From Octopus sinensis (Eukaryota), in assembly GCF_006345805.1 (NCBI RefSeq), contig NW_021829228.1, forward strand, positions 1-6,600: DNA of 6,600 nucleotides, written 5' to 3'. Shown here piece after piece: positions 1,354-6,600 of the stretch. The notes under the pieces were generated by a model. The model ran no database searches and had not been told where the DNA came from. It saw only the letters and a list, made by a program, of their open reading frames with translations. Every line of letters starts with the position of its first letter. Positions within the stretch are counted from its first letter, which is position 1. The position numbers and the translations under genes are program-made.

Positions 1354-1368
1354 TCTATCTATCTATCT

Positions 1369-1421
<53 letters not shown>
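1354..1421. repeat. (TCTA)n microsatellite
   Basis: Near-perfect tandem TCTA; source of the YLSIYLSI pseudo-ORFs. Confidence 0.95.
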
Positions 1422-1642
1422 ATATTATATAAATATATATATATATATACACACACCACTCATCACACACACACACTCACAACACACTATATATACTGTA
1501 TGTACATATACATGCATACACACACACATATATATATATAATACATATACATACATACACACATACATACATACATACATACATACATACATACATAGAT
1601 ACATACATACATACATACATACATACATACATACATACATAC
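1422..1642. repeat. Compound (TA)n/(CA)n tract followed by (CATA)n microsatellite (about 1547-1642)
   Basis: Direct reading; source of the MYVCMYVC pseudo-ORFs on the minus strand. Confidence 0.95.
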
Positions 1643-2788: not shown

Positions 2789-3028
2789 GTATGCTTCTTA
2801 TTGTAGGTTTGCAGAGAGCTTACCATTCATTCTTACACATTCCTTCCTTTCATCATGGAATTATTCATTGAGTATTTTGTTTTTATTGGCTACGACTAAC
2901 GATAGCATGCAATAGATAACAGGCGTGGTAAGGTTGCCGGTGTAGTCACCTGCAGCCGAACCATGCGACAGGATGGACTAGTTTACACATTACTAGTAGT
3001 ACTAAGAGTTACCTGACATACATACATA

Positions 3029-3058
3029 CAGGGGTCGGACAAAATAATGGAAACACCT
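3029..3058 (+). repeat. Left terminal inverted repeat
   Basis: CAGGGGTCGGACAAAATAATGGAAACACCT, preceded by TA. Confidence 0.95.
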
Positions 3059-3211
3059 AACATCATAGCATCATAATTTTGAAATATCTATAAAACCGTC
3101 AAAAGCTTGTTTATTTTTATGTTTTTTGATTTATCATTAGTGTTGCTTAATATGTTTTGCTAAAATTGCTATTTCTTCTCAGATATTATCAGAAAAAGGC
3201 AATTCATTATT

Positions 3212-4271
3212 ATGATAGATCTATCGAACTTTCGAAGAGGTCAAATTGCTGGTGCTTGTCTTGTATAGCAGGCGCTAGCACAACGAAAACAGCCGAAATG
3301 TTTGGTGTATCAAGAAGTATTGTCAAGAAAGTAAAGACAGCCTTTGAGAAAGAGGGAAAAACCTCCTCGCCGAAACAAAGCTGCAGAAGAAAACCAAAAC
3401 TTTCAGATAGCAACCGTCGAACTCTTAAGCGAATTGTTAAAAAGGATCACAAAAGTATAACTCCCAAAATTACTGCAGAGTTTATTGACTACTTCGAGAA
3501 CCCAGTTTTCACAAAACTGTTCGCCGGGAGTTGCACAAAGCCGGATTTCACGAAAGGGCTGCAATCAGAAAACCACTACTTTCAAAAACGAACGTTACAA
3601 AGTGTTTAAAGTGGAGTAAAAACCGACAGAATTGGTCACTAGAGCAGTGTAAGAATGTTATTTTCTCGGACGAGTCATTATTTACTTTATTTCCGACCAC
3701 CAGCCGAGTATACGTGAGGAAACAGCCAAAAGAAGTATTTGACCCAGGCTGCCTTCTTTCAACTGTTAACAAGGTGGAGGATCTGTGATGATCTTGGGCG
3801 GGGGGAGGGGATATATCTTGGAAATCCGCCAGCCCAATGGTTTCCCTTCATGGCAGAATTAATAGTCAAGACAATTTAAGCATTTTATCTGATCAAATTC
3901 ATCCTATGGCTGCGGAACTGTTTCCGGAGGGAAATGCAATCTTTCAGGATGATAATGCACCAATTCACACACATAAAGTTATTGCTGAATGATACGAGGA
4001 ACATTCTAGTGAAGTTGAACAGCCTATCTGGCCACCACAGTCTCCAGATCTCAATATTATTGAATATTTATGGTACATTTCAGAAAAACAAGTAAGGAGT
4101 CGATATCCTCCACCATCATCACTACAAGAACTAGAGACTGTTTTAGCTGAAGAATGGACAAAAATTCCTTTGGAAACAATTCAAACTTTGTACAAGTCCA
4201 TATCTCGTAGAATTCAAGCTGTAATTACTGACAAAGGCAGACCTACCCCTTATTTAAATGAATTTGTTTGA
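3212..4271 (+). pseudogene. Tc1-family transposase pseudogene, about 343 aa when repaired, DD36E triad
   Basis: ATG at 3212 (MIDLSNFRRGQIAGA), HTH region GASTTKTAEMFGVSRS, RRKPK linker, D1 in IFSDES (3669-3671), D2 in FQDDNAP (3951-3953), E in WPPQSPDLNIIE (4062-4064). Lesions: CTTGT duplication 3255-3264, -1 near 3514, -1 near 3768, net +10 G-rich segment 3794-3812, in-frame TGA 3990-3992. The ancestral stop was probably near 4255; the current frame stops at 4271. Confidence 0.93.
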
Positions 4272-4278
4272 AACTTTA

Positions 4279-4308
4279 AGGTGTTTCCATTATTTTGTCC
4301 AACCCCTG
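4279..4308 (-). repeat. Right terminal inverted repeat
   Basis: AGGTGTTTCCATTATTTTGTCCAACCCCTG followed by TA; one mismatch to the left TIR. Confidence 0.95.
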
Positions 4309-4332
4309 TATATGCACTTATATGTATATGTA

Positions 4333-4346
4333 TATCTATCTATCTC

Positions 4347-4408
<62 letters not shown>

Positions 4409-4411
4409 ATC

Positions 4412-4450
<39 letters not shown>

Positions 4451-4456
4451 CATCTT

Positions 4457-4522
<66 letters not shown>
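4333..4522. repeat. Long (TCTA)n microsatellite, about 190 bp
   Basis: Tandem TCTA with a few interruptions; followed by TA/CA low complexity to about 4590. Confidence 0.97.
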
Positions 4523-4965: not shown

Positions 4966-5174
4966 GCTTGTAAATATATACACCTATATATCAATTTATC
5001 TATCTAGCTATATACAAATCTATATCTATATCTATATCCTTCTCTATATACACACGGATATGTGTATGTGTCTATATATATACACAGACACACATATATA
5101 CTATATATGTATATATATTATATATATATGGTGTGTTGTGTACATATATATATATGTACATATATAATATACAT

Positions 5175-5223
<49 letters not shown>

Positions 5224-5285
5224 TACATATATATGTGTGTTTATATATGTATTTATTTACATACACAAACGCACATATATATTTA
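4870..5285. repeat. Compound (TA)n/(CA)n/(TG)n low-complexity tract
   Basis: Includes (CA)n at about 4931-4957 and (TA)n at about 5179-5218. Confidence 0.9.
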
Positions 5286-6492: not shown

Positions 6493-6600
6493 CATACATA
6501 CATACATACATACATGTATTTATTTACATACACATACATACATACATACATGCACACATTCATACATTCATACATACATACACGCATGCATGCGCGCATA
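6493..6600. repeat. (CATA)n degenerate microsatellite
   Basis: Direct reading; runs to window edge. Confidence 0.9.

Follow-up and report, generated by a model that had tools for sequence, protein, structure and literature searches.

The window analysed here is the whole of a 6,600-nucleotide stretch of contig NW_021829228.1, and its positions 3029-4308 are occupied by a Tc1-like element of 1280 bp, as read from the sequence. This element is probably a dead copy of a Tc1/mariner DNA transposon residing in an octopod genome, and a member of a clade that is sister to the published Incomer family. Hereafter, W is used as a label for the clade of the window element and IC for published Incomer. 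This reading is built on the observed anatomy of the element, the spacing of its catalytic residues, its lesions, its position in the tree, and the octopus-type DNA on its flank.

Anatomy and decay of the element

The initial annotation of this DNA described a 1280-bp element with 30-bp terminal inverted repeats (TIRs), a repaired open reading frame (ORF) of about 343 amino acids, and a spacing of 36 codons between the second catalytic aspartate and the catalytic glutamate. This description holds when the sequence is read directly. The left and right TIRs are complementary at 29 of 30 nucleotides, with a single mismatch, and TA adjoins both ends of the element (Table 1). By our own arithmetic, about 2e-9 TIR pairs of such quality are expected by chance in 6.6 kb, and the 30-nt TIR is not of low complexity, unlike the many microsatellite inverted repeats of the window. 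The C at 3036 of the left TIR is a T-to-C mutation, T being present both in the right TIR and in the intact copies L008-L012 described below. The TIRs with flanking TA, and a single transposase that combines a helix-turn-helix (HTH) region with a DDE domain (Pfam, and PDB matches of an intact relative), are both characteristic of the Tc1/mariner (IS630-Tc1-mariner) superfamily.

What is left of the transposase gene occupies three reading frames, and comprises a paired-like HTH region for DNA binding and a catalytic domain of the DDE_3 type. Pfam detects HTH_23, HTH_Tnp_Tc3_2 and DDE_3, all above the cut-offs. The stitched ORF contains 343 codons up to the ancestral stop, and the intact relatives are also 343 residues long. 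The stitched query contains 349 residues, of which one is in excess at the third junction and five result from read-through, and the catalytic spacing is unaffected by them. For the intact relative P0001, matches are obtained to the catalytic domain of SB100X (5CR4, E 6e-43) and to the DNA-binding domain of Tc3 (1U78, E 8e-4). By homology with Sleeping Beauty and Tc3, the N-terminal paired-like HTH region of an intact 343-aa transposase would bind the 30-bp terminal repeats, and its RNase-H-like domain with the D...D-36-E triad would excise the element. The excised element would then be reinserted at a TA dinucleotide, which would be duplicated.

When the window protein is aligned by MAFFT, its triad falls on D153, D244 and E279 of Sleeping Beauty. 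Between the second D and E lie the 108 nt of 3954-4061, which are exactly 36 codons of a single frame and contain one in-frame TGA at a position where the relatives have W. The 34 residues of canonical DD34E/Tc1 are thus not found, and in the same alignment the D-E loop of the four DD34E references contains a gap of two columns. Of the 120 best relatives in the database, 64 show D-36-E in a motif scan, among them every full-length member of the window's clade that is legible to the scan (four are illegible). The closest second copy, L001, and its protein P0008 also have D-36-E. Because 64 relatives and the closest copy share it, the spacing of 36 residues is family-wide. A spacing private to the window copy, which according to the initial annotation would have undone its reading, is thus not observed.

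Six disabling lesions are present in the window copy: four frameshifting indels, one TGA and one lost stop codon (Table 1). Several conserved W residues are in addition replaced by C, R or L. Because of the frameshifts, the nonsense codon and the lost stop, the window copy can no longer make a transposase and is dead. Its ends are almost intact, so that it could at most be mobilised in trans.

Table 1. Features of the element and lesions of the window copy (window coordinates)
Feature	Position	Strand	Basis
Left target-site duplication, TA	3027-3028	.	Direct reading; the same TA flanks intact relatives
Left TIR, CAGGGGTCGGACAAAATAATGGAAACACCT	3029-3058	+	29/30 complementary to 4279-4308; near-identical in L006 and L008-L012
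5' untranslated leader, from TIR to start codon	3059-3211	+	ATG placed at 3212 by alignment with intact elements
Remnant of 343-codon transposase gene	3212-4253	+	Three-frame translation, stitching, Pfam; relatives at 66-78% protein identity
Lesion 1, 5-bp tandem duplication CTTGT/CTTGT (3255-3259, 3260-3264), frameshift +2	3255-3264	+	Alignment with intact L006 and L008
Lesion 2, 1-bp deletion in A run (4 A, 5 in relatives)	3513-3516	+	Alignment with intact relatives
First catalytic D, GAC in FSDES	3669-3671	+	Aligns with SDE motif of Sleeping Beauty and Incomer
Lesion 3, 1-bp deletion in A run (AA, AAA in relatives)	3768-3769	+	Alignment with intact relatives
Lesion 4, G-rich insertion of ~10 bp in GGGSVMIWG box, borders ambiguous	3795-3811	+	Alignment with relatives
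Second catalytic D, GAT, second D of FQDDNAP	3951-3953	+	Reading, translation, alignment
Lesion 5, in-frame TGA (TGG, W, in relatives)	3990-3992	+	Translation and alignment
Catalytic E, GAA in NIIE	4062-4064	+	36 codons past second D; reading, motif scan, alignment
Lesion 6, ancestral stop TAA to TTA, read-through to TGA at 4269-4271	4254-4256	+	Alignment; relatives end ...GGPTPY*
Right TIR, reverse complement CAGGGGTTGGACAAAATAATGGAAACACCT	4279-4308	-	Complementarity and relatives; L001 has the same right end
Right target-site duplication, TA	4309-4310	.	Direct reading

The W clade and its relation to Incomer

A search of 5.8 billion proteins gives 132 relatives at E <= 1e-10, none of them a protein encoded by the window itself. 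The best full-length relatives (P0001-P0007) are intact, 343 aa long and 66-70% identical to the window protein, and are encoded by contigs of 1.2-1.4 kb, which is about the size of one element. For P0008, the identity to the window transposase is 78%. Its contig, L001 (European Nucleotide Archive, ENA, ERZ8879894), is 88% identical to the window over 1012 bp at the nucleotide level, and shares the right end of the window element before entering a (TA)n array. At positions 1-106 of this contig (ENA ERZ8879894 NODE_4445), a (TGT)n array and sequence unrelated to the element stand in place of its first 270 bp, so that the called 318-aa P0008 begins in non-homologous DNA. Two further relatives, L004 and L005 (ENA ERZ25070786), are 78-79% identical. 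They are rejected as host copies, because no octopus short interspersed element (SINE) is found on their contigs. Four Joint Genome Institute (JGI) metagenome loci containing a 21-mer common to the window and L001 are chance matches, showing similarity neither to the element nor to the SINE.

Intact elements are found in an amphipod and in metagenomes. The copy of the amphipod Trinorchestia longiramus (L006, GCA_006783055.1) has TA followed by CAGGTGGTGGACAAAATAATGGAAACACCT at its end, is 1272 bp long and contains an intact ORF, and its left TIR differs at positions 5-7. Five marine and other metagenome contigs (L008-L012, two of them from Tara Oceans, PRJEB4352) have TA followed by CAGGGGTTGGACAAAATAATGTGAACACCT, and contain a 1270-bp element with an intact ORF. 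Where the ends are legible, these copies have nearly identical 30-bp TIRs and TA duplications. Thus, the W family is sharply defined by a length of ~1270 bp, a conserved 30-bp TIR, a TA duplication and a 343-aa D-36-E transposase.

The named hosts among the matches are arthropods (the spiders Araneus, Trichonephila and Parasteatoda, the amphipod, and the mantis shrimp Oratosquilla), the frog Dendrobates tinctorius, the nematode Strongyloides venezuelensis and the cardinalfish Sphaeramia orbicularis. The relatives annotated as Tcb1/Tc1-like, namely those of T. longiramus (KAF2366629.1), Araneus ventricosus, Trichonephila clavipes, D. tinctorius, Oratosquilla oratoria, S. orbicularis and the Tara contigs, share with the window element the W clade (99.8%), the 343-aa architecture, D-36-E, similar TIRs and TA. 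They differ from it in sequence, with 53-70% protein identity and a synonymous divergence (dS) of ~1.0-1.2, and the amphipod and Tara copies are intact, whereas the window copy is decayed.

Incomer is defined by D-36-E, a length of ~1.2 kb (1005-1487 bp), TIRs of 22-32 bp, a TA duplication, and one intronless ORF for a transposase of ~346 aa (314-382), and is monophyletic and close to DD34E/Tc1 (PMC6875036). At every structural point the window element lies within this definition, with a spacing of 36, a length of 1280 bp (1270-1272 bp in relatives), a 30-nt TIR with TA, and 343 aa. In both groups the extra residues of the spacer lie at the same place, the elements are ~1.2-1.3 kb long, and the intronless ORF encodes ~345 aa. 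They differ in the motifs (FQQDNAPCH...LNPIEH in Incomer and FQDDNAPIH...WPPQSPDLNIIE in W), in transposase length (346 aa and 343 aa), in the DDE domain (33-53% identity between them), in the repeat (CACTCACTGGCCACTTTATTAGGTACAC in Incomer and CAGGGGTTGGACAAAATAATGGAAACACCT in W), and in the hosts, those published for Incomer not including molluscs. The TIR of W agrees with that of vertebrate Incomer at 14 of 28 positions by our own count, although this is not a formal criterion of the family. A literature search with the terminal-repeat strings found no paper.

To place W, a sample of 14 Incomer and 10 outgroup DDE domains from Additional file 4 of PMC6875036 was aligned with the window protein and 73 database relatives, including those with spacings of 34, 35 and 38. 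Mostly-gap columns were removed, and neighbour-joining trees were calculated from 154 trimmed DDE columns. In a second analysis with 1000 bootstraps, 17 Incomer-type database proteins from a profile search were added. In the second tree, W is supported at 99.8%, Incomer (31 sequences, 14 published and 17 from the database) at 94.2%, and the group of W, Incomer and P0055, all of which are D-36-E, at 84.5%. The two analyses agree (W 99-99.8%, Incomer 93-94%, the joint group 84-84.5%), and the deeper nodes are poorly supported in the first (4-43%). The position of W outside the monophyletic clade of 31 Incomer sequences suggests that it is a DD36E clade sister to sampled Incomer, and not a member nested inside it. 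The initial annotation had called the element an Incomer-type DD36E transposon and proposed its placement in a tree with the Tc1 families. The structural part of this assignment stands, as does the grouping with the DD36E sequences. Membership of sampled Incomer is not supported, since in the tree W lies beside it, as the lineage closest to it, and half of the compared TIR positions differ.

Three more distant database proteins, P0081, P0084 and P0086, one of which is from the bee Anthophora quadrimaculata, have 38 residues from D to E. In the tree they lie close to the DD34E references, and they may be Intruder-like elements.

The element may simply be Incomer, W being a fifth, unsampled cluster and the octopus copy extending the hosts of Incomer to molluscs. 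We consider this possible, but doubtful. Besides the structural agreement in every respect and the joint clade at 84.5%, the identity between the DDE domains of W and IC (mean 45%, 33-53%) reaches values that overlap with the minimum within IC (43%, mean 58%), and the two-residue insertion is common to both. On the other hand, the 31 sampled Incomer sequences are monophyletic at 94% without W, and the terminal repeats differ. Neither an FQDD nor an LNIIE string is present in any supplementary alignment of PMC6875036, although its authors used iterative TBLASTN searches, and W-type proteins therefore lie outside the published set. The choice between a fifth Incomer cluster and a sister family as the name for W is largely a question of where the border is drawn, and the distinction from the sister-clade reading is to that extent one of naming.

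It is unlikely that W is an offshoot of DD34E/Tc1 that gained its two loop residues independently. W shares with DD34E/Tc1 (Sleeping Beauty, Passport, Frog Prince, Quetzal) the superfamily, the domain order, the TA target and the match to 5CR4. However, DD34E/Tc1 elements have 34 and not 36 residues from D to E, show 28-46% DDE identity to W, and in fish and frogs carry repeats that are much longer, mostly of 180-300 bp in Sleeping Beauty and ZB. Spacer length alone is not diagnostic of a Tc1 family, and DD35E and DD38E relatives show that the loop is prone to indels. DD36E is also known from a Leptospira phage and an archaeon, and from TLEWI, which are DD36E Tc1-like elements with introns, confined to bivalves and reported to be absent from cephalopods (Puzakov et al., bioRxiv 10.1101/656579). 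TLEWI resembles the window element in its DD36E spacing and mollusc host, but it has no TIRs, a spliced ORF, a low copy number and the motif YQDNDSKH, whereas the window element has TIRs and FQDDNAPIH, and its coding sequence is collinear with that of intronless relatives. TLEWI, the only DD36E group found described in molluscs, is therefore unrelated to the window element in motifs and structure. This case and the weakness of the deeper nodes leave room for convergence. Against it, both analyses unite W and IC at 84-84.5%, the two groups are collinear and gapless across the trimmed 154-column alignment, with their two extra residues relative to DD34E at the same position, and the mean DDE identity of W is higher to IC (45%) than to the DD34E references (38%).

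Several points weigh against the reading of the window element as a dead octopod copy from a sister clade of Incomer. The trees were made by neighbour-joining on 154 columns and not by maximum likelihood, and the 84.5% support for W with Incomer is moderate. Unnamed proteins of matching spacing stood in for named DD35E/TR, DD37E/TRT and DD38E/IT references. The D-E loop is indel-prone, and DD36E arose independently in TLEWI, the phage and the archaeon. Finally, the age estimate assumes that L001 is from the same genome as the window or a related one, and the host is inferred from one repeat family and not from a unique locus.

Divergence and probable acquisition by the octopus lineage

The window copy and L001 differ with a nonsynonymous divergence (dN) of 0.11, a dS of 0.10, and a Kimura two-parameter distance (K2P) of 0.117 over 995 nt. 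This divergence is neutral, and fits two copies that have long been decaying in the same or related genomes. In comparison with the amphipod copy (dS 1.03, omega 0.20) and a Tara copy (dS 1.18, omega 0.14), the divergence is saturated and has occurred under purifying selection. We infer both the horizontal origin and the age: most likely, the octopus lineage acquired the W family by an old horizontal arrival, and the window copy then decayed neutrally. A horizontal acquisition is suggested because the patchy distribution of the transposable element is unlikely to result from vertical inheritance since the bilaterian ancestor.

Transfer between a fish and a cephalopod, as proposed in the initial annotation, is not supported for the recent past, and we regard it as very unlikely in either direction. 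The W clade is present in a teleost, as a Sphaeramia orbicularis fragment that is the sole fish relative found, and in a frog, and ZB, a DD34E fish element, has been reported in the squid Euprymna scolopes (PMC9777934). The Sphaeramia fragment also shows a high identity to an amphipod protein, as described below, which would mean that cross-phylum transfer occurs in the clade. However, the identity of the window protein to the fish fragment is no more than 69%, and to the amphipod partner of this fragment 66%, and the dS of 1.0-1.2 to the closest relatives with a known source (amphipod and Tara) is saturated. The six disabling lesions, and the K2P of 0.117 from the closest relative under neutral evolution, likewise indicate that the copy is old.

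The Sphaeramia orbicularis fragment P0158 (A0A673AAQ8) and the Trinorchestia longiramus protein P0156 (KAF2366629.1) are 94% identical over 103 aa. This identity may reflect horizontal transfer across phyla, or else one of the two assemblies may be contaminated. Cross-phylum transfer within the W clade is plausible.

The initial annotation described Incomer as known mainly from fish, frogs, bats and a few arthropods, and the published hosts agree with this, being 141 vertebrates, 4 insects and 9 arachnids only (Sang et al. 2019, Mob DNA 10:45; PMC6875036). The DD36E/Incomer lineage is not reported from molluscs in the searchable open literature. Likewise, among the best 120 of 4308 relatives obtained by a profile search with seven Incomer sequences, no mollusc is present among the proteins with a named source, many of these relatives having no source name. 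TcMar-Tc1 elements as a whole are abundant in coleoids, with octopus- and squid-specific expansions, and a previous study that noted their resemblance to Dfam entries of aquatic vertebrates considered it consistent with vertical descent (PMC8967140).

As a tentative reading, in which our confidence is somewhat below even, W may be a so far undescribed lineage, either a sister family of Incomer or its fifth cluster, that spreads horizontally mainly among marine animals (amphipods, stomatopods, plankton, reef fish and octopus), the octopus being the first mollusc host of the DD36E/Incomer lineage. If W does circulate in this way, the intact amphipod and Tara copies would be candidates for a naturally active element. 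If confirmed, molluscs, in the form of cephalopods, would be added to the hosts of the DD36E branch of Tc1/mariner, and published Incomer would turn out to have a sister lineage, distributed widely among marine invertebrates, that its sampling had missed. Such a result would bear on how Tc1 families are delimited, spacer length alone being insufficient, and on how frequently such elements cross phyla at sea. The value for Tc1/mariner classification and host range is modest. For octopus genomics, the element is one more dated Tc1 insertion and an incremental point of host range and classification. No functional consequence for the locus is visible in the window, so that the element adds nothing to the biology of the locus and opens no new question.

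Octopus-type repeats and other features of the flanks

A SINE-like repeat of octopus type at 2227-2661 lies 370 bp upstream of the element in the same window. Over 439 bp it has 84% identity to chromosome OX597830.1 of Octopus vulgaris (GCA_951406725.2; E 6e-130), and the 4.3-kb OX597830.1 locus contains at least three further partial copies. The ORF across this repeat has two protein matches in the whole database, one of which is 'Hypothetical predicted protein [Octopus vulgaris]', with 27 of 28 aligned residues identical. Because the flanking repeat matches OX597830.1 and is multi-copy in Octopus vulgaris, an octopod host is well supported, in agreement with the cephalopod host suggested in the initial annotation.

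That the element is foreign to this genome, through contamination or chimeric assembly, is scarcely credible: W-type proteins in short bacterial-labelled contigs (Acinetobacter MAG, Gordonia) show that such elements do contaminate assemblies, but the window element is flanked by TA duplications, the microsatellite-rich composition is the same on both sides, and the octopus-type SINE lies on the same window.

The bacterial-labelled transposases of the W and Incomer clades (the cluster of P0034, and P0260) are on contigs of 560-1981 bp, labelled as an Acinetobacter metagenome-assembled genome (MAG; MBK5648184.1), Gordonia cholesterolivorans (WP_428832074.1) and Vibrio parahaemolyticus. These eukaryote-type Tc1 transposases are likely to be animal DNA contaminating bacterial assemblies.

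Pfam gives no matches for six flanking ORFs, and no tRNA genes were found in the window. The 54 sub-threshold Rfam matches (mir-297, mir-1277 and others) are all in microsatellites and are artefacts, and a sigma-70 promoter scan is irrelevant to a eukaryotic element. The SINE-like repeat, taken as 2167-2661, contains an internal (TA)n/(TG)n array, and begins with a tandem duplication of 62 bp (2167-2228 and 2229-2290; Tandem Repeats Finder period 62, 93% match). A second, partial copy of the octopus-type repeat is present at 137-281 and is 73-79% identical to copies in locus L003. Microsatellites, with tetranucleotide and dinucleotide arrays, are very dense in the window (1354-1425, 1508-1643, 1924-2010, 4333-4521, 5094-5256 and 6493-6590). 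The element lies in a (CATA)n/(TATG)n context, and a (TATC)48 array begins 25 bp past its right end.

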